The translations under genes were made by a program, and so were the position numbers. This document shows positions 447 to 60,675 of a stretch of DNA of 64,000 nucleotides, piece by piece (position 1 is the stretch's first letter; the number at the start of each line of letters is the position of its first letter). Where the stretch lies: the IMG/VR virus record IMGVR_UViG_3300034072_000926, positions 1 through 64,000 of that record. One strand, 5' to 3'. The notes beneath the pieces are model-generated. The model was not told the origin of the DNA, did not search any database, and saw only the letters and a list, made by a program, of their open reading frames with translations.

Positions 447-525
447 TGGAGGCGCGCAAGGGACTCGAACCCTCATACTCCAGCTTTGCAGGCTAGCGGA
501 CTAAACCAATTCTCACCAACGCGCC
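447..525 (-). tRNA. tRNA-Cys(GCA)
   Basis: Cloverleaf, anticodon loop CTGCAAA, U73, CCA encoded. Confidence 0.9.
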
Positions 526-602
526 ATGTTTGGTAGTTTTGTGGAGAACCAACTCCACGGGAACTTGCGAACCTACCACCCAGCAGCCGAAGCTGTCTCT
601 TG

Positions 603-631
603 GCTATAAGGACGAGGAGTCCTTATGTCAA
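603..631 (-). promoter_or_regulatory. sigma70-like promoter with palindromic spacer
   Basis: TTGACA-17-TATAGC; spacer contains ATAAGGAC-N5-GTCCTTAT. Confidence 0.7.
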
Positions 632-641
632 TACCTTTTTG

Positions 642-712
642 AGCGGGTAAGGAGAATCGAACTCCTAGCATCAGCTTGGAAGGCTGAGGTATTACCACTA
701 TACGATACCCGC
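642..712 (-). tRNA. tRNA-Gly(TCC), no encoded CCA
   Basis: Anticodon arm TCAGC-CTTCCAA-GCTGA, TTCGA T-loop. Confidence 0.9.
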
Positions 713-723
713 ATGTCCAGCTA

Positions 724-1404
724 TCACTTAATGATAGCTGAAACTGTCTTGCCGCTTGCGATGCCTGTCAACGTATCGATGAACCCATTCACTGCATTAG
801 ATGCCTGATTAACCTGATCCACTGCCGAGTTCTTTTCCAGGACCAAAGCGTTAGCCTGACCCAGGACGTTGTTGGCTGCATTCACTGCATTATCGGCTTG
901 GTTCTTCGCAGCCTGCAACACCGCAATCTGCGCTGCATCAGCGCCGCTGTCGATGGCATTCTGTAAAGCCTGAGCCTTATCCAGCTGATCAGCTAGAGCA
1001 TTAGCTTGATCAGCCAGCGCCGTTGCTTGATCAGCAAGGGCGGATACTTGTTCCTCAACAGCAGACTGAAGGCGTCCAGCCACCGATGCTGCCATTGCAC
1101 CTGCCTGTGCTGCTAGGCTTCCTGTGAGGTTACCCAACAGACCAGCAGCATCAAGGTGTTGCAATGACTTGAACGTATTGTATCCAGGGACCATTCCCAT
1201 CAGCTTCTTGAGCATTGTCTGCCCAACTGAACTGAAGTTGTAGGTCCTAAGACTAGCAGCAACCGAACCCGATGTTACCGGATTTGCGGCCAATCCTGCA
1301 ACTAATTGTGAGACACCTGCATAGTTGGCAATTAGGTCATCATCGACCCGATCCAACCTTGCGTGGATGGCTTGCAATTGAGTATTGAGATTGTTATCTG
1401 CCAT
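724..1404 (-). CDS. Ala/Gln-rich coiled-coil hypothetical protein
   Basis: 226 aa ORF, AGGAG RBS, upstream TAGACT-17-TATAGT promoter. Confidence 0.75.
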   Translation of the reverse strand: MADNNLNTQLQAIHARLDRVDDDLIANYAGVSQLVAGLAANPVTSGSVAASLRTYNFSSVGQTMLKKLMGMVPGYNTFKSLQHLDAAGLLGNLTGSLAAQAGAMAASVAGRLQSAVEEQVSALADQATALADQANALADQLDKAQALQNAIDSGADAAQIAVLQAAKNQADNAVNAANNVLGQANALVLEKNSAVDQVNQASNAVNGFIDTLTGIASGKTVSAIIK

Positions 1405-1462
1405 TGTGCTCTCCTGTTCTTAGTGTTTCCACTATACAGAAACAGGTGAACAAAGTCTATAT

Positions 1463-1538
1463 TGGAGCGGGTAGCGGGAATCGAACCCGCCTCGGTGACA
1501 TGGCAAGCCACTGTAATCAACCAATATACTATACCCGC
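1463..1538 (-). tRNA. tRNA-Gly(GCC)
   Basis: Anticodon arm GTGGC-TTGCCAT-GTCAC, CCA encoded. Confidence 0.9.
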
Positions 1539-1545
1539 ATGTTCA

Positions 1546-1827
1546 ATCTTGAGGTCCGTAGCCGCGATCCTGTTCTATGCTACAATCTACCTACCCGGAC
1601 TTGCGTGTCCAAGTGCCTCGCCATTACGCGAAAAGAGGCTTACTGCCCCTCGGCTGCACCAACCCGACCCTATAACTGGAGAATTGCCAGGGTCTGTTTG
1701 GCTTGCTGGCTTAATCACGGTGGTCTCTTCCCTTATGCGAGGTGTTAACCTGCTCCCACTCGTTCTCCACGCCAGTCGCGAACTTCCTCAAAGCATTTCT
1801 GCCCTGCTGTAGCTCGACCGTCAAGAT
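1546..1827 (-). ncRNA. rnpB: RNase P RNA-like gene (bacterial type, reduced S-domain)
   Basis: P1 AUCUUGA(C)GGUC/GACCUCAAGAU; P2 GCUACA/UGUAGC; P3 hairpin; CR-I GAGGAAGUUCGCG pairs with CR-V AACAGGAUCGCGGCUAC (P4 with bulged U); P5 CUGG/CCAG then CAAG; P15 GCCAA/UUGGU with L15 GGU; P18. Confidence 0.85.
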
Positions 1828-1901
1828 TGGTAGGCCCTAAGTGAATCGAACACTTGTCAATCCCTAATCAGGGGACCGCATTACCACTATGCTAAGAGCC
1901 T
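1828..1901 (-). tRNA. tRNA-Ile(GAT), atypical U37
   Basis: Acceptor AGGCTCT/AGGGCCT, loop CTGATTA, CCA encoded. Confidence 0.85.
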
Positions 1902-1917
1902 ATAATCAACATTTTGT

Positions 1918-1992
<75 letters not shown>

Positions 1993-2000
1993 ATATTGTT

Positions 2001-2035
2001 CCTCCATTATAGCGGAGGGTTAAACAACTTGTCAA
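2001..2035 (-). promoter_or_regulatory. sigma70-like promoter with -10 inside an inverted repeat
   Basis: TTGACA-18-TATAAT; CCTCC-GCTATAAT-GGAGG. Confidence 0.8.
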
Positions 2036-2041
2036 ATTGTT

Positions 2042-2116
2042 TGGGGTGACCGACGGGGTTCGAACCCGCGACTACGCCTTCACAGGGCGGAATGTTACCA
2101 CTACACCACGGTCACC
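2042..2116 (-). tRNA. tRNA-His(GTG)
   Basis: G-1:C73 8-bp acceptor, loop CTGTGAA, CCA. Confidence 0.93.
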
Positions 2117-2181
2117 ATGAAAAACTAGGCAGTTAGCTTCAATGCTCGTTACTGACGATTGACAGTCAGCACCTAGTTAGA

Positions 2182-2262
2182 ACTGAGTCCGGAGTCGAAC
2201 CGGCTACTTAGGCAGCGCCCCAATTACGTTATGGATTCCACTGGCCCGGCCAGCTACTCAGT
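2182..2262 (-). ncRNA. tRNA-like RNA with non-canonical anticodon region
   Basis: 7-bp acceptor ACTGAGT/ACTCAGT, T-arm CCGG-TTCGACT-CCGG, 6-bp D-like stem, no canonical anticodon loop. Confidence 0.55.
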
Positions 2263-2264
2263 AG

Positions 2265-2338
2265 CGATCCATAGGGGATTTGAACCCCTCATCTCCACCG
2301 TGACAGGGTGGCGTCTTCACCAAGCAGACTCATGGACC
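2265..2338 (-). tRNA. tRNA-Asp(GTC), no CCA
   Basis: CCACC-CTGTCAC-GGTGG, G73. Confidence 0.92.
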
Positions 2339-2363
2339 ATTGGGTGGGGAGACCCCGATGACC

Positions 2364-2867
2364 TTAGAGGTCATCGAAGTCGCCGTTCTTGATTTTCGGA
2401 TCTTCGTAGAGCTTAATGCCCTTACGCTGATTGTGGGCGCCGTTGCGACCGTGATGAGTCGAGGACTTGCGGTGCCACCGACGCTTACGGGTGCCAGGAA
2501 TGGGAAGACCCTTTTCCATAGCGTGAGCAACAGCTTCCTTCTGGCGAGCAAAACGCTTGTTCCAGTAACCCTGGACAGGAAAGACCTCGCCATCGGGAAG
2601 GACAATCTTGCTCTTGTCGACGGGACGACCATAGTCATCGCGGACAATCCAGTCGTTCTGAACACCGGTCCACCAGTCCAGCGAGGACTCGCTGTAAAGT
2701 CGCAGCATCTTGCGATTGCCGTTCCAGTGCATATGCGTTTCGGCCCAGAAGCCGCCGATATTGCCGTTGGAGCGATCACGAGTAAACTCGAGAAAGCTCT
2801 TAGCGTCGTTGAAGACGCGAGTAGTGCCGTTGCGATGAATCGCAGTCAGCGGGAACAGATATTCCAT
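2364..2867 (-). CDS. hypothetical protein within tRNA array
   Basis: 167 aa ORF with GGAGG RBS. Confidence 0.8.
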   Translation of the reverse strand: MEYLFPLTAIHRNGTTRVFNDAKSFLEFTRDRSNGNIGGFWAETHMHWNGNRKMLRLYSESSLDWWTGVQNDWIVRDDYGRPVDKSKIVLPDGEVFPVQGYWNKRFARQKEAVAHAMEKGLPIPGTRKRRWHRKSSTHHGRNGAHNQRKGIKLYEDPKIKNGDFDDL

Positions 2868-2967
2868 TTTTGACCTCCATTAGTGTTACCACTAATGAAT
2901 GTCGGCAATCCAGAAAACCATGTTGTCCTCCTTTGTTACAACCATCATAGCATAAGCCTAGAGGTTG

Positions 2968-3552
2968 TCAACCTGTTTTGGAGACCGTGGAGAATAGGGG
3001 ACTCGAACCCCTCACCTTCTCGCTGCCAGCGAGATGCTCTCCCAGATGAGCTAATTCCCCATGAGAGGTCTGATCAATGCTTGGTCTGTTGGACAGTAGA
3101 GCTTCCAAGTAGGTTGCTTTGCCCTCATACCAATATCCATCAAACTTGCAGAAATATTCCTTACCCCAAAGGGTCCTTTTGTAGACACCCTTGGGATAAT
3201 GAATCCAACCTTCGACCTGTTCACCGGAATGCCTCAGGGCCCAGGGCTCTTTGGACTTCCATGTGATGAACAATGTCTTGGTCTGCGGCTCCACTGATTT
3301 AATTCTGTGGAATGTCTTATTGCTTCTGAGGGCAACAGAGAACCGCTTGCGAACAACTTCCTTGCCCTCAACGTCCTCCACATAACCTCCACTGAACACG
3401 AAGCTCAAGTAAGAGAATGGATGACTATGAAGGTAAGGAGTTGCATCATTGCGTTTGATATGATGTATTCTCACATGCAAGCGGTCAATCTTTACAATTG
3501 ACCAGCGTTCCAGATAACCAACTAGGTGTTTATAAGGTGTGAAAAACATCAC
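2968..3552 (-). CDS. cupin-like hypothetical protein (3' end overlaps tRNA-Ala)
   Basis: HSHPFSYLSFVFSGGYVE cupin-like motif; reading frame runs through tRNA-Ala(GGC). Confidence 0.65.
   Translation of the reverse strand: MMFFTPYKHLVGYLERWSIVKIDRLHVRIHHIKRNDATPYLHSHPFSYLSFVFSGGYVEDVEGKEVVRKRFSVALRSNKTFHRIKSVEPQTKTLFITWKSKEPWALRHSGEQVEGWIHYPKGVYKRTLWGKEYFCKFDGYWYEGKATYLEALLSNRPSIDQTSHGELAHLGEHLAGSEKVRGSSPLFSTVSKTG
2988..3060 (-). tRNA. tRNA-Ala(GGC), no CCA
   Basis: GGGGAAT/ATTCTCC with G3:U70, loop CTGGCAG. Confidence 0.92.
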
Positions 3553-3558
3553 CGCAAA

Positions 3559-4174
3559 TTACTTGGCTAGGAGCAATCTGTCAATACCTATTGCCCAACC
3601 AATGCCCTCGGCGTATCGACCGCCTCCGGCAATCTGTTTCTGCGCTCCAAGCTTCGAGCATTCAGCTTCGAAGCCTTCCTCAACATAATATGTCAAGCCG
3701 CGCTTTACAGCGTCATTGAGAACATACTCGACACCGGTGGCATCCAAGCAAGCCCTCAAAAGTTCTTTGCATTCAGAGGCGTCCTGAGGGGCTTCCCCGC
3801 CCAAGTATTCGACTCCAAACTGTGTGAACTCTCGATAACGTCCGGCCTGTGGCCTTTCGTATCGGTAGCAGCGTGATACATAGAACAGCTTTTTAGGCTT
3901 TCCTTCATACTGCCATTTGTCCCTCCAGAGTTCCTGGATGAGACCTGTTGCTTCAGGGATTAAGCAGACATCGCGGCCTCCCTTATCCTGGAAAGCCCAC
4001 ATCTGATTAACAATTTCTGGTCCGGCTTTATCTATGAAAGTCTGTTGCTCCCATAGACTAGGAAGTATAACTTCCTCAAAGCCTGCTTCAGTGAACCAAC
4101 CCCCTCAGGAGATCGGTCACTGAGATCATCTCACGGGCGTCATCGCCGGTGAGGACTCGTGTTCCCCTTAGCAT
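3559..4174 (-). CDS. hisS: histidyl-tRNA synthetase catalytic-domain-only protein, +1 frameshift at G5 run (4100-4104)
   Basis: MLRGTRVL..., then in shifted frame GFEEVILP...MWAFQDKGGRDVCLIPE...RYERPQAGRYREFTQFGVE...GWAIGIDR (class II motifs); no anticodon-binding domain. Confidence 0.8.
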
Positions 4175-4203
4175 ATTCTATACTCCATAGGCTTTATTGC
4201 CTG

Positions 4204-4277
4204 CTCCCCGCTAAGGATTCGAACCTTATACTTTCCGAGCTCAAAACACGGCGGCCGGACCTACCAGCTAACGGGGA
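4204..4277 (-). tRNA. tRNA-Gln(TTG), atypical D arm, no CCA
   Basis: U1-A72 acceptor, loop TTTTGAG, TTCGAAT T-loop. Confidence 0.75.
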
Positions 4278-4278
4278 A

Positions 4279-4366
4279 TGGCGGAGAGCATCGTAGTCGA
4301 AACGAATCCCTTGCGGGACCAACCCGTTTCCAGCGGGTGGCTGGTGACCTGCCAGCGTTACTCTCC
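4279..4366 (-). tRNA. tRNA-Ser(GGA)
   Basis: Long variable arm, loop CTGGAAA, G73, CCA. Confidence 0.92.
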
Positions 4367-4367
4367 A

Positions 4368-4455
4368 TGGAGGATGGCTAGGGTCCCGCCCCCTAGACCC
4401 TTACGGGTCCCAACTGGTTTCGAATCAGTGCTAGACCTCGTCTAGTTAACCATCC
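4368..4455 (-). tRNA. tRNA-Ser(CGA), atypical T-loop
   Basis: Long variable arm, loop TTCGAAA, T-loop GGCGGGA, U73, CCA. Confidence 0.75.
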
Positions 4456-4465
4456 ATGTATTCTG

Positions 4466-4536
4466 CTGGGAAACCTGGATTCGAACCAGGATTGAACGAT
4501 TAACAGTCGCTTCTCTTACCCTTAGAGGATATCCCA
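4466..4536 (-). tRNA. tRNA-Asn(GTT), no CCA
   Basis: Loop CTGTTAA, G73. Confidence 0.85.
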
Positions 4537-4542
4537 ATGAAC

Positions 4543-4660
4543 GATGAGCAAGTGTTGTAAAGGACTTTAAGCCAGCAAAGCTGACCTTGATGGGTTTGAA
4601 CCATCTAGTTTTGTGTATGAGACAAAAGTTTTACCGATAACCCTTTACTGTCGGCTCATC
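4543..4660 (-). ncRNA. Y RNA-like (YrlA-type, tRNA-like domain) copy 1
   Basis: GAUGAG-C-CGA...UUG-CUCAUC bulged stem; CCGA-N7-GGGUUAUC; T-arm GAUGG-UUCAAAC-CCAUC; closed acceptor-like hairpin. Confidence 0.75.
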
Positions 4661-4663
4661 TTG

Positions 4664-4737
4664 CTCCCAATGTAGGATTCGAACCTACAGCGACCTGGTT
4701 AACAGCCAAGCGCCCCTACCGATAGGGCCCATTGGGA
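4664..4737 (-). tRNA. tRNA-Asn(GTT), no CCA
   Basis: CTTGG-CTGTTAA-CCAGG, G73. Confidence 0.9.
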
Positions 4738-4760
4738 ATGTGTGATAACTGAGTTATCAA

Positions 4761-4828
4761 AAGGGCAAGTAATTGTCCCAGGGGTGTTTCAGTTTGCATA
4801 AATGATAACCCTGAGTCTTTCGGCCCTT
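4761..4828 (-). ncRNA. minimal Y RNA-like copy 2
   Basis: AAGGG-C-CGA...CUUG-CCCUU; CCGA-N8-GGGUUAUC; CUCAGGG/CCCUGGG stem. Confidence 0.7.
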
Positions 4829-4830
4829 AG

Positions 4831-4900
4831 TGCTCTAGGTAGGACTCGAACCTACGCGCTCTCGGCTCGCAACCGAAAGTCCCATCCAGTGGGCTAGAGC
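4831..4900 (-). tRNA. degenerate tRNA-Arg(GCG)-like
   Basis: Acceptor and T-arm intact, loop TTGCGAG, positions 8-9 apparently missing. Confidence 0.55.
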
Positions 4901-4901
4901 A

Positions 4902-4976
4902 TGGTAGTCACGGGGAATTCTGCCATCCCGACCTGAGTCTTGTAAGGACCCTGCTCTACTTCTGAGCTACGCGACC
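4902..4976 (-). tRNA. tRNA-Val(TAC), atypical T-loop
   Basis: GGGTC-CTTACAA-GACTC, CCA. Confidence 0.85.
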
Positions 4977-4977
4977 A

Positions 4978-5060
4978 TGGTGGGAAGTTGCAGAGTCGAA
5001 CTGCGCGCTTTCGCCGCCGGGTTACAGCCGGCTTACCCCGTCCCGGGGCTGAAACTTCCC
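4978..5060 (-). tRNA. tRNA-Tyr(GTA)
   Basis: GCCGG-CTGTAAC-CCGGC, long variable arm, CCA. Confidence 0.88.
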
Positions 5061-5103
5061 ATGTTCTCTTTATAGAGGAATAGGTGACCTGCGTCATTAT
5101 TCG

Positions 5104-5175
5104 TGATCCATAGGGGAATCGAACCCCTGTTCCCGCCTTGAGAGGGCGTGCTCTTAACCACTAGAGGAATGGACC
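5104..5175 (-). tRNA. tRNA-Glu(CTC), no CCA
   Basis: Loop CTCTCAA, Glu-type D arm. Confidence 0.9.
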
Positions 5176-5177
5176 AT

Positions 5178-5252
5178 TGGTGGATTGGGGCGATACCTAG
5201 TCGCTTGCCGCTGCCTTGAGTTACAAAGCATCTGCTATAGATTGCACAACCC
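5178..5252 (-). tRNA. pseudo-tRNA / tRNA-like, anticodon undetermined
   Basis: Acceptor-like stem with ACCA end; non-canonical anticodon and T loops. Confidence 0.4.
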
Positions 5253-5259
5253 ACATAGT

Positions 5260-5337
5260 TGGTGGACGATACAGGGCTCGAACCTGTGAAACCTCTTCCA
5301 TGTCAAGGAAGCGCTCTACCAACTGAGCTAATCGTCC
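5260..5337 (-). tRNA. tRNA-Val(GAC)
   Basis: CTTCC-TTGACAT-GGAAG, CCA. Confidence 0.92.
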
Positions 5338-5339
5338 GT

Positions 5340-5427
5340 TGCGGCAGTGGTGCTCGAACCCACCAGTCGCCCTCATTTGGGCATACAGGCTTATGAGGCC
5401 TGCGACTAACCATCTTGTCCTTACCGC
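5340..5427 (-). tRNA. tRNA-CAT (Met or Ile2) with long variable arm, no CCA
   Basis: CAGGC-CTCATAA-GCCTG; extra arm GCCC-AAATGA-GGGC. Confidence 0.8.
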
Positions 5428-5430
5428 GAG

Positions 5431-5503
5431 TGCAACAGGTGGGAATCGAACCCACTTCCTCCGATTTTCAGCCGGGTGCAATGACCACATTTGCTACCGT
5501 TGC
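5431..5503 (-). tRNA. tRNA-Phe(GAA), no CCA
   Basis: Loop CTGAAAA. Confidence 0.88.
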
Positions 5504-5504
5504 A

Positions 5505-5664
5505 TGGTCTGGCCGCTACCCAGTAGTCTATACTTGTCCCTTACGGACTGGCCTAGACTGGCGCTGCGCGGTCCCGAAGAGTTTTGACGCTCTATTCGAT
5601 ATTTTGAGAGCCCAGGGAGTAAATGGGCTCTGGGATCTTGGAAGCTTCCAAGCTTCCAAGACCT
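5505..5664 (-). ncRNA. structured ACCA-ended RNA of unknown class
   Basis: Starts right after upstream tRNA CCA; closing helix GGTCT(T)GG/CCAGACC-A; multiple hairpins (TCTTGGAAGC/GCTTCCAAGA, GAGCCCA/TGGGCTC). Confidence 0.5.
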
Positions 5665-5740
5665 TGGTGCGAAGTCAGGGAATCGAACCCTGTTAGCCGG
5701 CTTATGAGACCAGTGCGATGACCATCACCGCCCACCTCGC
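5665..5740 (-). tRNA. tRNA-CAT (Met or Ile2)
   Basis: CTGGT-CTCATAA-GCCGG, A73, CCA. Confidence 0.88.
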
Positions 5741-5752
5741 ATGAGGTATTTG

Positions 5753-5823
5753 CATCCCCTGTAGGAGTCGAACCCACGCTCTTGGACTTGGAAACCAATG
5801 TGCTACCGTAACACTTAGGAGAT
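5753..5823 (-). tRNA. tRNA-Trp(CCA), no CCA end
   Basis: A1-U72, G73, loop TTCCAAG. Confidence 0.8.
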
Positions 5824-5839
5824 ATATTGTCAATATTCG

Positions 5840-5911
5840 CAGGCCCCAGAGGATTCGAACCTCTACCAACGGCTTTGGATCACCGTCATGCCCCCTGTAC
5901 ATCAGAGGCCT
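5840..5911 (-). tRNA. Trp-like tRNA with 8-nt anticodon loop
   Basis: ACGGT-GATCCAAA-GCCGT; acceptor AGGCCTC/GGGGCCT, G73. Confidence 0.6.
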
Positions 5912-5918
5912 ATGTTTG

Positions 5919-5989
5919 TAGACCCAGAACGATTCGAACGTCCGCTGCTGGCTGTTCACACCAGTTTGCTACCGCTACAACACAGGTCC
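5919..5989 (-). tRNA. degenerate tRNA-Phe(GAA)-like
   Basis: Loop GTGAACA (G32, C37), wobble-rich acceptor. Confidence 0.55.
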
Positions 5990-5990
5990 G

Positions 5991-6063
5991 GCCCCACGCC
6001 GGGAATCGAACCCGAATCCACCAAGCGGAACTTGGTATGCTTAGCCTAACAATATCTAGGGGA
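5991..6063 (-). tRNA. degenerate tRNA (loop GTTCCGC)
   Basis: T-arm intact, mismatched acceptor, odd anticodon loop. Confidence 0.45.
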
Positions 6064-6144
6064 TGGTGGGAAGCAATGGATTCGAACCATTCCCGAAGAG
6101 CGGTTTTACAGACCGCCTGCTAGAGCCACTAGCTTTTACTTCCC
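6064..6144 (-). tRNA. tRNA-Tyr(GTA)
   Basis: GCGGT-CTGTAAA-ACCGC, CCA. Confidence 0.9.
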
Positions 6145-6207
6145 ATAGTAGTTGGCCAGGAAGCGATCGAGACTTCCTATTTCACTGCCGATCTGCAGAA
6201 CCATCAG

Positions 6208-6286
6208 AGCACGTAGGTGGAATCGAACCACTTACCGAAGGCTTAAAAGGCCCTTGCCGTTCCAAACGACTTTCGGCTCTACGTGC
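6208..6286 (-). tRNA. tRNA-Lys(TTT), enlarged D arm, no CCA
   Basis: AGGGC-CTTTTAA-GCCTT. Confidence 0.8.
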
Positions 6287-6287
6287 A

Positions 6288-6365
6288 TGGTCAGGGTGAA
6301 GGGACTCGAACCCCCACGATGTCCTCCTTCCAAAGGAGACGACTTACCAATTAGTCCACACCCTG
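6288..6365 (-). tRNA. tRNA-Pro(TGG)
   Basis: C1-G72, loop TTTGGAA, CCA. Confidence 0.92.
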
Positions 6366-6373
6366 ATGAATGT

Positions 6374-6447
6374 TGGTGCTTCCAGGAAGAATCGAACTTC
6401 CAATACCCGCTTATCAGGCGAGTGTTATACCATTTAACTATAGAAGC
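6374..6447 (-). tRNA. tRNA-Ile(GAT)
   Basis: CTCGC-CTGATAA-GCGGG, CCA. Confidence 0.92.
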
Positions 6448-6453
6448 ATGGTT

Positions 6454-6582
6454 GATGAGCAAGTGGTGAATTGGACCGTTTACTAGCCACCGCGACCAGG
6501 CCCATAATGGGCGGACCCGCCGAGAGTCGAACTCGGATCGTTTGATTTCAAGTCAAAGATAACCCAAATCTATCGGCTCATC
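6454..6582 (-). ncRNA. Y RNA-like (YrlA-type) copy 3
   Basis: GAUGAG-C-CGA...CUUG-CUCAUC; CCGA-N7-GGGUUAUC; T-arm CCGAG-UUCGACU-CUCGG; closed acceptor CGGGUCC/GGGCCUG. Confidence 0.8.
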
Positions 6583-6584
6583 AG

Positions 6585-6657
6585 TGCCTGTGGTGGGGGT
6601 CGAACCCACGCTGGATGCGTTCTGAACGCATTGCCTCTACCTTTGGGCTACACAGGC
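6585..6657 (-). tRNA. tRNA-Leu(CAG), short variable loop, no CCA
   Basis: ATGCG-TTCAGAA-CGCAT, A73. Confidence 0.88.
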
Positions 6658-6662
6658 GTGTT

Positions 6663-6739
6663 TGGTGTTCCCCGTGGGACTCGAACCCACAACATTCGGT
6701 ACCTAAAACCGACGACTCTACCAGTTGGCCTAGAGGAAC
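6663..6739 (-). tRNA. tRNA-Leu(TAG), short variable loop
   Basis: TCGGT-TTTAGGT-ACCGA, CCA. Confidence 0.88.
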
Positions 6740-6752
6740 ATAGTTGCTGACT

Positions 6753-6798
6753 AACAGCTTGAGCTGTTCAAAACAGCTTGAGCTGTTCAAAACAGCTT
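6753..6798. repeat. tandem palindromic 19-bp repeat (2.4 copies)
   Basis: AACAGCTTGAGCTGTTCAA x2 + AACAGCTT. Confidence 0.9.
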
Positions 6799-6874
6799 GG
6801 TGCTCTGAGTGGGACTCGAACCCACAACATCTGGAGTTTGAAACCAGCGACTCTACCAGTTGGCCTACCAGAGC
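6798..6874 (-). tRNA. tRNA-Leu(CAA), short variable loop
   Basis: Loop TTCAAAC, CCA. Confidence 0.88.
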
Positions 6875-6882
6875 ATAGTAGT

Positions 6883-44499: not shown

Positions 44500-45030
44500 T
44501 TACGTAGTTTTCTTTGCCGCCGGCGCAACAATCGCAAAGAGCTGTCGCTCACTGCGGGCAACCGGGCGCTCAAACTTGAAATCTGTGAGGAATCCCAAGA
44601 AATCATTCATCACGCTGGCACCAACATCCAAGTGCGTGATTTCACGGCCCTTGAACTTGATGATGATCTTGACCTTGTCGCCTTCATCCAGGAAACCCTG
44701 TGCGCGCTTGGCCTTGACCTTGAGGTCATTCATGTCTGTGGTAGGGCGAAGCTGAATCTCTTTCAGTTCAACCCTCGACTCCCTGGACTTCTTGGCAGCT
44801 TCCTTTGCACGACGACTCTCGTCATACTTGAACTTGCCATAATCCAGGATTTTGCAGACTGGCATACCGTTAGCCATATTGATAGCTACGAGATCCAGGC
44901 CTACCTGACGGGCCCGGTTTCGAGCGTCGATCAGTGAAACTACACCAATCTGCTCACCAGTGTCAGCAATGAGACGTACTTCTTTTGCGCGGATCTGATC
45001 ATTCACCGCATACTTAAAATTCACAGACAA
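44500..45030 (-). CDS. infC: translation initiation factor IF-3
   Basis: NDQIRAKEVRLI...GLDLV...PVCKILDYGKFKY...KEIQLRP. Confidence 0.95.
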   Translation of the reverse strand: MSVNFKYAVNDQIRAKEVRLIADTGEQIGVVSLIDARNRARQVGLDLVAINMANGMPVCKILDYGKFKYDESRRAKEAAKKSRESRVELKEIQLRPTTDMNDLKVKAKRAQGFLDEGDKVKIIIKFKGREITHLDVGASVMNDFLGFLTDFKFERPVARSERQLFAIVAPAAKKTT

Positions 45031-58038: not shown

Positions 58039-58275
58039 TTACTGGCTTTGGAGTTTGATATACATTGCATACCGCTTCTCGATCTTTTCGATCGCTTCGA
58101 GATACGGTGCTGCGGCTTCTTCTGCGGCTTTCTTTTTCGCCGCGTTCATTTCCAGTTTGAGTTCCTGGATCTGATTCCACATGTCCGTGATAGCCGTGCC
58201 TTCCGAGAGGATTTCCTGCTCGGTCGTGCCCGACTTGGACATCAATTGCTTGCGAACGGTGGAGAGAATGCTCAT
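58039..58275 (-). CDS. hypothetical protein
   Basis: 78 aa, ATGA-type coupling. Confidence 0.7.
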   Translation of the reverse strand: MSILSTVRKQLMSKSGTTEQEILSEGTAITDMWNQIQELKLEMNAAKKKAAEEAAAPYLEAIEKIEKRYAMYIKLQSQ

Positions 58276-58721
58276 GCGATCTGCACCGTTATACCAGCCT
58301 GACGGAGGTAATTAACGGCCTCGAGGATCTTTCGATTCCACGCTTCGGCGGCAAGGTCCATAGGCTTATCGGGCATCGAGACGCTGACCCACTGGTTCAC
58401 GCAACTCTCAATGGCATGCTTGGCTTCAACGAGCCCCATGCCCGTCAGACCGCGCAGTTCCTTGATCGCGTTGATCTTTTGCCACTGAGTAGTCCCATCG
58501 ACATATAGTCGCAAAGTCTTCGCATTGGGGAACTTGTTGGACACAATGCCCATAATGAGGCGTGCCTTCCAGTCCTTGCCGAGGATCGGCGCGAGGGCTT
58601 CCAGGACTTCGATCGAGGTGTCTCGGGTATAGAACTGCTTGATAACGCGCAGAAAAGAAGCCGAAACTTCGTCGAGCGCGAAGAACTGATCGTCCTCAGT
58701 TTCAGGGTCAATGAGTGCCAC
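58272..58721 (-). CDS. protein with C-terminal bL12-CTD-like domain
   Basis: KINAIKELRGLTGMGLVEAKHAIE; AGGAG RBS before GTG. Confidence 0.75.
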   Translation of the reverse strand: MALIDPETEDDQFFALDEVSASFLRVIKQFYTRDTSIEVLEALAPILGKDWKARLIMGIVSNKFPNAKTLRLYVDGTTQWQKINAIKELRGLTGMGLVEAKHAIESCVNQWVSVSMPDKPMDLAAEAWNRKILEAVNYLRQAGITVQIA

Positions 58722-58822
58722 GGTATCTCCTTTGATTCGCCGCAGCTCTACACTCCTTGCACCGCTTGTCAACCTTTCATATAAGTATTGTGCTGAAAAG
58801 AATATCTTGTTATTGTGGTTTA

Positions 58823-60117: not shown

Positions 60118-60675
60118 TTACCCTAGGTAAATTGCACTATTTGCACCATGCTCGAAGCATTCAACGCTCACGAGACGCACATCAGGGTTAACCGCATAAC
60201 GACCTAGTTCGCCCTTCTTCATCTTCTCAAGAAGTTCGACGGACTTGTCATAGACTAGCTTGGCGGTCAATTCACAACCCACCCCAGGAACGATACGGAG
60301 ATCGCACAGACGTCCGACAGAATAAGGAGTCGGTGTGAAACCGCTGCCGTCTTCTTCGCTAGAAGCTTTGCCATTCCAATTTGCATCTAGAGCAAACTTT
60401 GCAAAGGTTTCAAATACTTCACGCGCAGGATCATCCTCAGCGACCAAGATCGTGTGGTCAAACATATGATCTAGATAAGCCTTAATGGGCTTCATTCCGC
60501 CGAAGTCGAAACACCAGTTCTTTTCATCAAGCGTTTCAGACTCGAAAACAAACTTGAAGCCTAGCGAGTAGCCATGAAGCGTTGAGCAATGGCTGTGATT
60601 TGCCTTCCACTGACGGAAGCAGCAGGAGAGTCCACGGTCAGTGCCGTAGGTTTTGGTCGATTGATACTTTGCCAT
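60118..60675 (-). CDS. queD: 6-carboxytetrahydropterin synthase QueD-like
   Basis: CFRQW.A.SHC..LHGYS...WCFDFG..K.IK..L...FDH...E. Confidence 0.88.
   Translation of the reverse strand: MAKYQSTKTYGTDRGLSCCFRQWKANHSHCSTLHGYSLGFKFVFESETLDEKNWCFDFGGMKPIKAYLDHMFDHTILVAEDDPAREVFETFAKFALDANWNGKASSEEDGSGFTPTPYSVGRLCDLRIVPGVGCELTAKLVYDKSVELLEKMKKGELGRYAVNPDVRLVSVECFEHGANSAIYLG

Follow-up and report, generated by a model that had tools for sequence, protein, structure and literature searches.

A stretch of the minus strand at positions 1546-1827, located within the 43-gene tRNA array of a huge phage, folds into the catalytic domain of a bacterial type-A RNase P RNA joined to a specificity (S-) domain of only about 60 nt. 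The element was found in the window, i.e., the whole analyzed stretch of 64,000 nucleotides of IMG/VR record IMGVR_UViG_3300034072_000926 (about 465 kb in total), and it belongs to a family of 93 copies (82 distinct sequences) occurring in viral contigs, in phage DLP6 and in published, curated phage genomes of 635-735 kb. The most likely function of this RNA is 5' maturation of phage pre-tRNAs, probably together with the host RnpA protein, although catalysis is only inferred. We found no prior report of a phage RNase P RNA in the literature searched, which lacked most subscription-journal papers, so that an earlier description cannot be excluded.

The boundaries given in the preliminary description were exact. 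Position 1827 is the first base after the encoded CCA of tRNA-Ile(GAU) (1828-1901, minus strand), whose 3' end defines the 5' end of the RNA, while position 1546 is the last base of the P1 3' strand. A 7-nt leader (1545-1539) then precedes tRNA-Gly(GCC) (1463-1538, minus strand), and RNase P cleavage at the +1 position of this tRNA would create the 3' end of the RNA. The whole predicted RNA (1539-1827, minus strand) is 289 nt long, including the leader. The strand folds with z = -3.3 against shuffled sequences.

All the elements listed in the preliminary description are present on the minus strand. Helix P1 is formed by AUCUUGA C GGUC (1816-1827), which begins directly after the CCA of tRNA-Ile, and GACC UCAAGAU (1546-1556), while P2 is formed by GCUACA (1808-1813) and UGUAGC (1579-1584). 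The P3 hairpin (CAGGGCA GAAA UGCUUUG; 1789-1806) closes on the first G of GAGGAA, as in the Rfam type-A model. The CR-I equivalent (GAGGAAGUUCGCGA) comprises J3/4 and the P4 5' strand (AGGA AGU U CGCGA; 1776-1788), with a bulged U at 1781, and pairs with the P4 3' strand UCGCGGCU (1560-1567). The latter, together with J2/4 (AUAGAACAGGA), forms the CR-V equivalent (AUAGAACAGGAUCGCGGCUA; 1560-1578). P5 consists of CUGG (1772-1775) and CCAG (1706-1709), and is followed (1656-1705) by J5/15 (CAA), P15 (GCCA/UGGU), J15/16 (AACAG), P16, P17, the L15 loop (CGGGU; 1662-1666) and GC. The J18/2-like joiner (1585-1592) reads AGGUAGAU, compared with the family consensus AGAUAAAU and AGAUGAAU of Escherichia coli. 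Two points were added or corrected. A P6 pseudoknot, not listed previously, is formed between GAGAA of J5/7 (1763-1767) and UUCUC of the P17 loop (1679-1683). In addition, three hairpins, and not P18 plus two further ones, lie between the P15 3' strand and J18/2: a clade-specific insert (1593-1655), located where bacterial P18 sits, is predicted by the minimum free energy fold to contain a GCC/GGC stem enclosing two hairpins (1633-1651 and 1618-1631), followed by a third hairpin (1593-1614), and which of these is homologous to P18 is uncertain. Compensatory changes in this insert occur among the window and family members L061, L014, L002 and L005, whereas compact members of the family lack it.

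The reduced S-domain (1718-1762) is composed of P7 (CG-A-GUGG / CCAC-CG), a GAG joiner, one hairpin (1737-1753) and a purine-rich 13-nt strand AUAAGGGAAGAGA (1724-1736). P7 covaries across the family. Besides P7, only a GA/GUUNNNA internal loop and one hairpin are present, and the inner S-domain is 18-40 nt long in most members and 40 nt in the window, while one member (L148) has no S-domain at all. Apparently truncated members of 119-128 nt (L143, L144, L146 and L033) turned out to be alignment artifacts caused by very long S-domain inserts, and no tRNA or tmRNA was called by ARAGORN on the large inserts.

Searches with the Rfam RNase P models, the check proposed in the preliminary description, gave no hit on the window, either at gathering thresholds or at E<=10 (positions 1400-2000), and no RNase P hit on the DLP6 copy. 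However, a covariance model (R1) built only from other phages' copies hits the window at 1655-1789 and 1558-1629, with 49.6 bits (E 3.6e-17) and 29 bits (E 1.5e-9), and the identical copy in L004 (1558-1815) scores 66.9 bits (E 1.8e-22). A further weak R1 hit in the window (9555-9621; 12 bits) was judged to be noise. Moreover, eight family members show significant but sub-threshold hits to Rfam RNaseP_arch (E from 5.6e-14 to 0.05), full-length and at the same coordinates as the family model: L156 (59.1 bits, E 5.6e-14), L169 (48.9 bits), L185 (42.2 bits), and L128, L155, L070, L039 and L163 (21-27.5 bits). For comparison, this model reaches at most 14.3 bits on random genomes (PMC3579882). No family member reaches a gathering score, and the link between the Rfam models and the window copy is therefore transitive, through R1. 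In the reciprocal search, R1 gave a hit of 9.2 bits (E 0.033) at the right place (the 3' core) of E. coli rnpB, but unrelated DNA (phages Phosso and T4) also gave 8-9-bit hits, so this result was counted as noise.

Strong covariation was observed in the core helices. In the 82 distinct sequences (alignment A4), the nested helices are 92.9% paired, against 66.8% in shuffles and 34-44% when slid, with 581 double-sided cells against 188, and 0 of 500 shuffles reached the observed value. All 6 P2 pairs show double-sided changes with 95.9% of cells paired (the DLP6 copy, for example, has GUCAUC/GAUGAC), P5 is 98.7% paired with double-sided changes in all 4 pairs, and P15, P16 and P17 are 92.5-96.7% paired with double-sided changes. 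Helices P4, P6 and P1 were tested separately with custom scripts. P4 is 97.1% paired, with 44 double-sided cells versus 9.9+-2.3 in shuffles and compensatory changes in 5 of 8 pairs, and its geometry (3 bp, a bulged U, then at least 5 bp) is conserved; member L156 has the canonical bacterial GGAAAGUC.../...GCUUA form. In cognate versus non-cognate duplex tests, P6 gave -5.65 versus -2.49 kcal/mol, with more than 25 distinct complementary combinations, and P1 gave -12.1 versus -4.45 kcal/mol. The functionally critical nucleotides are nearly invariant, including GAGGAA in J3/4, the bulged U (kept in 74 of 76), the two A's in J5/15 (79 and 82 of 82), GGGU of L15 (76-80 of 82), the A's in J18/2, and A-ACA-AA in J2/4 (80 of 80).

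The genomic context is consistent with a role in tRNA maturation. Of the 93 copies, 50 have a tRNA within 30 nt, with gaps equal to the lengths of the P1 strands, and of 704 tRNAs located within +-2.5 kb, 703 are co-oriented with the element. The leaders of the window tRNAs look like good ordinary bacterial RNase P substrates, with AU at -2/-1 in about 36 of 43, while an encoded CCA, the partner of L15, is present in 24 of 43; we found no evidence for the earlier suggestion that the RNA is tuned to atypical tRNAs. The same window encodes a CCA-adding-enzyme-like protein, IF3, an L7/L12-like protein and an aaRS fragment. No RnpA gene was found next to the copies or among the 79 ORFs of the window (no PF00825 match), which covers only 64 of about 465 kb, and no protein neighbor is universal, the recurrent ones being an RNase H-like protein, HNH, a metallophosphatase and PHO4. 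A narrow pattern scan of the genomes of 185,579 species revealed only 4 copies, all on MAG contigs. No copy was found in the 40 kb examined of Sinorhizobium phage Phosso, which shares a similar tRNA-Gly.

The closest known system is bacterial type-A RNase P RNA (RF00010; E. coli M1 RNA), with which the element shares the helix order (P1, P2, P3, P4, P5, P6, P15, P16 and P17), the P4 geometry with a bulged U, the length of P2 (6 bp plus a G.U pair), the P6 pseudoknot between J5/7 and L17, and the conserved joiners (GAGGAA; GCAA before P15; AAAyAG; CGGGU in L15; AGAUrAAUG; ACAGAA...CGGCU(U)A). It differs in its length (200-290 nt instead of about 350-400 nt), in the replacement of the S-domain (P8-P14, CR-II/CR-III) by P7, a 2-nt/7-nt internal loop and one hairpin, in the absence of P18 from compact forms and the presence in others of variable hairpins, some with GAAA loops, whose relation to P18 is uncertain, in the usual P4 sequence (AGUUCGCG/CGCGGCU rather than AAGUCCGG/CCGGCUU), and in its location within phage tRNA arrays. 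The RF00010 model (gathering score 100 bits) does not detect the window or any member, whereas E. coli rnpB used as a control scores 318.6 bits. The archaeal type-A model (RF00373) scores family members best, and, like archaeal RNAs, the compact phage forms lack P13, P14 and P18; however, its gathering score (84 bits) is never reached, the S-domain is skipped as local ends, the one known host (Stenotrophomonas, for DLP6) is bacterial, and the L15 GGU loop together with tRNA-encoded CCA and the 7-position P2 are bacterial traits.

The comparison with S-domain-reduced archaeal type T made in the preliminary description is apt as an analogy, but not as membership. Type T is also a natural RNase P RNA that keeps the catalytic domain, has lost most of the S-domain and was missed by existing covariance models for that same reason (PMC3579882). 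It has, however, a 3-bp P2, a shortened P15 and very high GC content, works with several archaeal proteins and is the only RNase P RNA of the cell, whereas the phage family has a 6-7-bp P2 and a P6 pseudoknot, presumably coexists with the host rnpB, and gave no reported RF02357 hit. Engineered mini RNase P RNAs and isolated C-domains of E. coli M1 RNA retain cleavage activity with reduced efficiency and greater dependence on the L15-RCCA contact (PMC5839562), but these are laboratory constructs and not a natural, widespread lineage under selection. An RNase P-like RNA of camelpox virus (PMC3001073) shows only loose similarity, has no pre-tRNA cleavage activity in vitro and is not linked to tRNA genes. 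T4 species 1 and 2 RNAs (rnaC, rnaD) and GOLLD RNA are likewise non-coding RNAs encoded in or beside phage tRNA clusters, but they are unrelated: the family model gives no hit on the T4 tRNA region and no GOLLD hit was reported by Rfam.

Taken together, these data indicate that the window encodes a homolog of RNase P RNA, of which we are nearly certain. We propose that the RNA is transcribed as part of the long co-oriented tRNA-array precursor, is released by the same cuts that release the flanking tRNAs, and then acts in trans, and possibly first in cis on the tRNA-Gly fused to its 3' end, to cleave the 5' leaders of phage pre-tRNAs, most likely as a holoenzyme with the host RnpA, thus giving the phage its own supply of tRNA 5'-maturation capacity during infection. 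We assign this interpretation a probability of about 0.7; activity in pre-tRNA 5' cleavage is likely, whereas host RnpA as the partner is about as probable as not. Since the S-domain, which normally binds the tRNA elbow, is vestigial, efficient tRNA recognition has to be assumed. Furthermore, in the close relatives L002 and L005 the gene is interrupted by a homing-endonuclease ORF, with loss of the P5/P6 5' strands, and the RNA is therefore not indispensable to every such phage. A more far-reaching, and in our view unlikely, possibility is that phages, especially huge ones with large tRNA arrays, carry a self-sufficient, ultra-compact ribozyme with a core of about 150-190 nt, working without the canonical S-domain and perhaps without any protein or with a non-RnpA partner. 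Made by "tRNA punctuation" of the array transcript and perhaps cutting first in cis, it would make phage tRNA supply independent of host RNase P, for example after host shut-off or under defenses that hit tRNA maturation. On this view, sub-lineages that graft a tRNA-like module (a T-arm plus an acceptor-like stem) onto the S-domain hairpin would represent a new way of building substrate recognition or regulation into the enzyme.

Among the alternatives, the best surviving, though improbable, is that the RNA is not itself an efficient enzyme, but a decoy that keeps the protein-binding face of RNase P RNA (P2-P3, J18/2, J2/4 and P15) and titrates or re-targets host RnpA, to throttle host tRNA maturation or to bias processing toward phage precursors. 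The vestigial S-domain, the lack of an RnpA gene in the window or near the copies, the inactivity reported for the camelpox virus RNA (PMC3001073) and the highest conservation of regions that contact the protein in bacterial holoenzymes, judging by the T. maritima holoenzyme structure, are in line with this view. On the other hand, nucleotides needed for chemistry and substrate docking rather than for protein binding (the bulged U of P4, GAGGAA, the two A's in J5/15 and GGU in L15) are equally invariant, P6 and P15-P17 covary strictly, and a phage with 43 tRNA genes needs more RNase P activity, not less. Slightly less plausible is an enzyme working only in cis, or a structural spacer insulating neighboring tRNAs from misfolding. 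The downstream tRNA does start 5-8 nt after the P1 3' strand in many copies, and RNase P RNAs fused to their substrates self-cleave in vitro (PMC3378863), but about a quarter of the copies (25 of 93) have no tRNA within 1 kb and 13 loci have none at all, yet these copies (e.g., L070, L073, L021, L041 and L109) keep the full conserved core, and a mere spacer would not conserve the catalytic core across 82 distinct sequences. A non-functional remnant of a captured host rnpB gene or host contamination, which the sub-threshold Rfam scores and the interrupted genes of L002 and L005 might suggest, is contradicted by the compensatory changes in every helix of 82 distinct sequences with GC content from 34% to 64%, and is further opposed by the presence of copies in the cultured phage DLP6 and in curated phage genomes, the rarity of the family pattern in a narrow scan of species' genomes and the strict co-orientation with phage tRNA arrays.

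RNase P RNA is regarded as a universal cellular ribozyme. Interestingly, the family reveals a blind spot in current Rfam models, and a new family model is easy to build from alignment A4, while phage DLP6 offers a cultured system for genetics and the compact RNAs are attractive for structural work and for tRNA-processing tools. The family also explains unannotated spacers in many phage tRNA arrays. If active, this RNA would be, as far as we could find, the first functional RNase P RNA family encoded by viruses, and the smallest natural bacterial-type RNase P RNA, i.e., a natural experiment on how little of the specificity domain is needed. It would also add tRNA 5'-end maturation to the translation functions that large phages bring with them, which already include tRNAs, aaRS, a CCA-adding enzyme and IF3.

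ARAGORN and Rfam placed 43 tRNA genes between positions 447 and 10309 of the window, nearly all of them on the minus strand. The analyzed element occupies the 289-nt spacer 1539-1827, which is flanked upstream (in the direction of transcription) by tRNA-Ile(GAU) (1828-1901), ending in an encoded CCA, and downstream by tRNA-Gly(GCC) (1463-1538). The minus strand of this spacer folds to -105.9 kcal/mol (z = -3.3 against dinucleotide shuffles). The identical element was found at the same coordinates, along with the same 43 tRNAs, in locus L004 (loci retrieved in this study are designated by L numbers) of the IMG/VR contig IMGVR_UViG_3300034072_000926 (465,259 bp), of which the window appears to be the first 64 kb. 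The array and its borders also contain further spacers of 115-900 nt with no tRNA and no long ORF (526-640, 2116-2263, 4278-4464, 5504-5664, 6145-6287, 7464-7642, 7715-7921, 8197-8336 and 9331-10235), in which Rfam finds nothing at gathering thresholds and which could hold other small RNAs or small ORFs.

When read against the family alignments, the RNA (positions numbered as 1828 minus the window coordinate) shows the following elements: P1 (1-7/276-282 and 9-12/272-275), P2 (GCUACA/UGUAGC), P3 with a GAAA loop, J3/4 and P4 (AGGA-AGU-U-CGCGA pairing with UCGCGGCU, with a bulged U), P5 (CUGG/CCAG), the P6 pseudoknot (GAGAA/UUCUC), P7 enclosing one hairpin and a 13-nt purine-rich strand, J5/15 (CAA), P15 (GCCA/UGGU), P16/P17, L15 (CGGGU), three hairpins in the place where bacteria have P18, J18/2 (AGGUAGAU) and J2/4 (AUAGAACAGGA). 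The preliminary description had delimited an RNase P RNA-like ribozyme at 1546-1827, and these coordinates run exactly from the first to the last base of P1.

The standard test was negative for the window itself. Rfam 15 (4227 families) reports only tRNAs in the window at gathering thresholds, and no RNase P family on positions 1400-2000 even at E<=10 with permissive filters; the same holds for the copy of Stenotrophomonas phage DLP6 (see below). Taken alone, this would meet half of the condition under which the preliminary description held that its proposal would be refuted.

The element is, however, one member of a large phage family. A blastn search found a 78%-identical core in an unannotated spacer of the tRNA region of phage DLP6 (locus L001; KU682439.2, 105770-106025), in which P1, P2 and P3 differ on both strands. 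This copy lies in an unannotated 258-nt gap before tRNA-Arg in the GenBank record, and DLP6 is the only cultured phage found to carry a family member. Exact-pattern scans of IMG/VR with conserved blocks returned many loci, 54 of which carried both the CR-I-like and the CR-V-like block, 150-293 nt apart. A covariance model (R1; 173 positions, 29 base pairs) built from 21 compact members found 93 copies (82 distinct; 61-181 bits; E from 1e-20 to 1e-64) in 100 loci, with GC content ranging from 34% to 64%. Although R1 was built without the sequence of the window, it hits the window at 49.6 bits (E 3.6e-17) and 29 bits (E 1.5e-9), the hit being split by a clade-specific insert. Carrier contigs range up to 519 kb, and at least 14 of the R1-hit contigs exceed 200 kb. 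Copies also occur in the published uncultured huge-phage genomes LR756501/LR756503 (735 kb) and LR745206 (635 kb). A narrow family pattern occurs only four times in one genome each of 185,579 bacterial and archaeal species, in every case on a MAG contig, and one of these (L185) is a full member.

The structure is supported by covariation in every helix. RNAalifold applied to a plain MAFFT alignment recovered P2, P5, P7, P15, P16 and P17 without guidance, and 23 of its 30 predicted pairs have double-sided changes. In the 82 distinct model-aligned sequences, 92.9% of cells are paired, compared with 66.8+-0.7% in column shuffles and 34-44% with partners slid. Of 29 pairs, 27 show double-sided change, with 581 double-sided cells against 188+-10 and a covariation score of 0.604 against 0.177; no shuffle out of 500 reached the observed values. 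It should be noted that this alignment is fitted to the model, and that one "helix" (58-60/120-122) is a spurious hairpin in the invariant CR-I. Helix P4 crosses P2, so it is in neither R1 nor the Rfam models, and it was therefore tested separately on members chosen with a pattern that excludes P4. The two strands change together (UCGCG/CGCGG, UCGGG/CCCGG, UCAGG/CCUGG, UCAGA/UCUGG, UCGCC/GGCGG and UCACG/CGUGG), and member L156 has the canonical bacterial GGAAAGUCAGCC/GGCUGCUUA. By aligned columns P4 is 97.1% paired, with 44 double-sided cells against 9.9+-2.3 in shuffles (0 of 500) and 25-33% pairing when slid, while the bulged U is kept in 74 of 76 sequences. P6, the type-A pseudoknot between J5/7 and the P17 loop, shows more than 25 different complementary combinations (e.g., AAACC/GGUUU, CUGCU/AGCAG, CCACC/GGUGG, CCAAGG/CCUUGG and UAGCUCAC/GUGAGCUA), and its cognate duplexes average -5.65 kcal/mol against -2.49 kcal/mol for non-cognate pairs. 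P1 behaves in the same way (-12.1 against -4.45 kcal/mol).

To compare the family with RNase P RNA, the type-A consensus and structure were obtained by running Rfam on E. coli rnpB (318.6 bits). The phage consensus matches it block for block and in order: (i) P2, followed by CGC, P3 and CR-I, reads GAGGAAGUUCGCG in the phage family and GAGGAAAGUCCGG in Rfam type A; (ii) J5/15, P15 and J15/16 read GCAA-[P15]-AACAG and GCAA-[P15]-AAAUAG, respectively; (iii) L15 and P15' read [P16']-CGGGUU-[P15']-GC and [P16']-CGGGUA-[P15']-GC; (iv) J18/2 and P2' read AGAUAAAUG-[P2'] and AGAUGAAUG-[P2']; and (v) J2/4 and P4' read ACAGAAUCGCGGCUA and ACAGAACCCGGCUUA.

Objective support comes from Rfam itself, since the RNaseP_arch model (RF00373) aligns family members full-length (model positions 1-288), at the same coordinates as R1 plus P1. 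The hits were obtained for L156 (59.1 bits, E 5.6e-14, or 4e-16 on the short region), L169 (48.9 bits, E 9.6e-11), L185 (42.2 bits, E 1.1e-8), L128 (27.5 bits, E 4.8e-4), L155 (26.9 bits, E 7.1e-4), L070 (25.3 bits, E 0.0024), L039 (22.6 bits, E 0.015) and L163 (21.0 bits, E 0.05). The alignments cover P1-P3, CR-I, P5, J5/15, P15-P17, L15, J15/2, P2' and CR-V, and skip the S-domain as local ends. For scale, at most 14.3 bits were reported for this model on random genomes and 53.6-228.6 bits on genuine archaeal RNAs (PMC3579882). None of the phage RNAs reaches the gathering score (84 bits), which explains why they are not annotated. The archaeal model probably fits best because, like archaeal RNAs, the compact phage forms lack P13, P14 and P18. 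The reverse test, a search of E. coli rnpB with R1, gave only 9.2 bits, which is no better than chance hits on unrelated DNA, and is therefore not used as evidence here.

Across the family the core lengths are almost fixed (CR-I 14 nt, P5 4 bp, J5/7 9 nt, the P15-L15 region, J18/2 8 nt, P2 6 bp and J2/4 11 nt), whereas the inner S-domain varies from 4 to 174 nt and the P18 region from 2 to about 90 nt. The compact cores are 168-191 nt from P2 to P4', or about 200-220 nt with P1. The usual S-domain remnant is a covarying 5-bp P7 enclosing 5'-GA, one hairpin and 3'-GUUNNNA, and we infer that the U-N-N-N-A could be a T-loop motif like those that dock the tRNA elbow in canonical S-domains. Interestingly, member L148 (13448-13597, minus strand) caps P7 directly with a GUAA tetraloop and so has no S-domain, being a natural RNase P-like RNA with only a C-domain and a 150-nt core. 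At the other extreme, some members (L143:340-700, L149:7450-7750, L144, L146, L151, L157, L162 and L033) extend the S-domain hairpin with a 12-20-bp stem tipped by a 100-150-nt module. In L143 and L149 this module contains a T-arm-like hairpin (GGGUUCRAAUCCC) and an acceptor-like stem, followed in L143 by ACCA, which looks like a tRNA-like domain grafted onto RNase P RNA, although ARAGORN calls no tRNA or tmRNA there and Rfam gives only weak tmRNA hits on L151. The clade of the window has a longer 3' strand (AUAAGGGAAGAGA) and three extra hairpins after P15', each with compensatory changes among the window, L061, L014, L002 and L005. In two close relatives of the window's phage (L002:2853-3452, minus strand, with the same arrangement in L005), the RNase P-like RNA gene is interrupted directly after CR-I by a 199-aa ORF, a SegE-like GIY-YIG homing endonuclease (PF19835, E 4.9e-6); the 11 nt that form the P5 and P6 5' strands are missing, while the rest of the RNA is intact.

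Of the 93 copies, 50 have a tRNA gene within 30 nt of the P2-P4' core and 68 within 1 kb. The median is six tRNAs within +-2.5 kb, and 703 of 704 of these are on the same strand. The usual gaps are 10-20 nt upstream and 14-21 nt downstream, which are the lengths of the P1 strands plus a short leader, and in L169 the RNase P alignment starts one base after the upstream tRNA. The RNA is therefore inferred to be delimited by tRNA processing, its 3' end being the 5' leader of the next tRNA. In the tRNA array of the window (447-10309), only 24 of 43 tRNAs encode CCA, and about 36 of 43 have AU at positions -2/-1 of the 5' leader, often as CAU or UAU; ARAGORN also calls one tRNA with a 2-base anticodon (5839-5911) and a probably spurious plus-strand tRNA-Leu (2338-2421). 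U at -1 is the commonest context in E. coli and is thought to contact A248 in J5/15 (PMC6582537), and the corresponding two A's are kept in 79 and 82 of 82 family members. In L159, a phage-encoded tmRNA (1261-1644, minus strand; RF00023, 97.4 bits) lies about 1.2 kb from the RNase P-like RNA of that contig.

No RNase P protein was found. No ORF family recurs next to the RNA in more than 9 loci, the recurrent neighbors being an RNase H-like protein (PF04308, found near the RNA in 9 loci), HNH, a metallophosphatase and PHO4, and none of the 79 ORFs of the window, which represents only 64 of about 465 kb, matches PF00825. The window does, however, encode several translation-related proteins on its minus strand: a CCA-adding-enzyme-like protein (63082-64000, cut by the window end), IF3 (44500-45027), a protein with an L7/L12 C-terminal domain (58272-58769), a class-II (HisRS-like) aaRS fragment (3559-3999) and a QueD/PTPS-like enzyme (60118-60672). 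It also encodes ClpX, ClpS, topoisomerase II subunits, AdoMet decarboxylase, NUDIX and an ADP-ribosylglycohydrolase.

No report of a phage-encoded RNase P RNA was found in a full-text literature search, which covered few subscription-journal papers, so that a prior description cannot be excluded. The nearest viral precedent is an inactive RNase P-like RNA of camelpox virus. The closest structural analog is archaeal type T, which was also missed by covariance models because of S-domain loss, but differs in its 3-bp P2, its archaeal proteins and its role as sole cellular enzyme (PMC3579882). We classify the element as a phage-borne, S-domain-minimized, type-A-like RNase P RNA. Alternative explanations are a protein sponge, a cis-only element and a decaying pseudogene; the conservation of catalytic residues, and the copies that lie far from any tRNA, argue against them.

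In summary, the RNA is a homolog of the RNase P catalytic RNA, in which selection maintains every helix and the nucleotides known to be needed for metal binding and substrate docking, and it is co-transcribed in orientation with phage tRNA arrays. Isolated C-domains of E. coli RNase P RNA do cleave pre-tRNA, with reduced efficiency (PMC5839562). We infer that the RNA is excised by the flanking tRNA cuts, assembles with host RnpA, whose known RNA contacts (P2-P3, J18/2, J2/4 and P15) are the best conserved parts, and then removes the 5' leaders of the phage's many pre-tRNAs. Recognition would rely mainly on the acceptor stem, the leader and the CCA-L15 contact rather than on the tRNA elbow.
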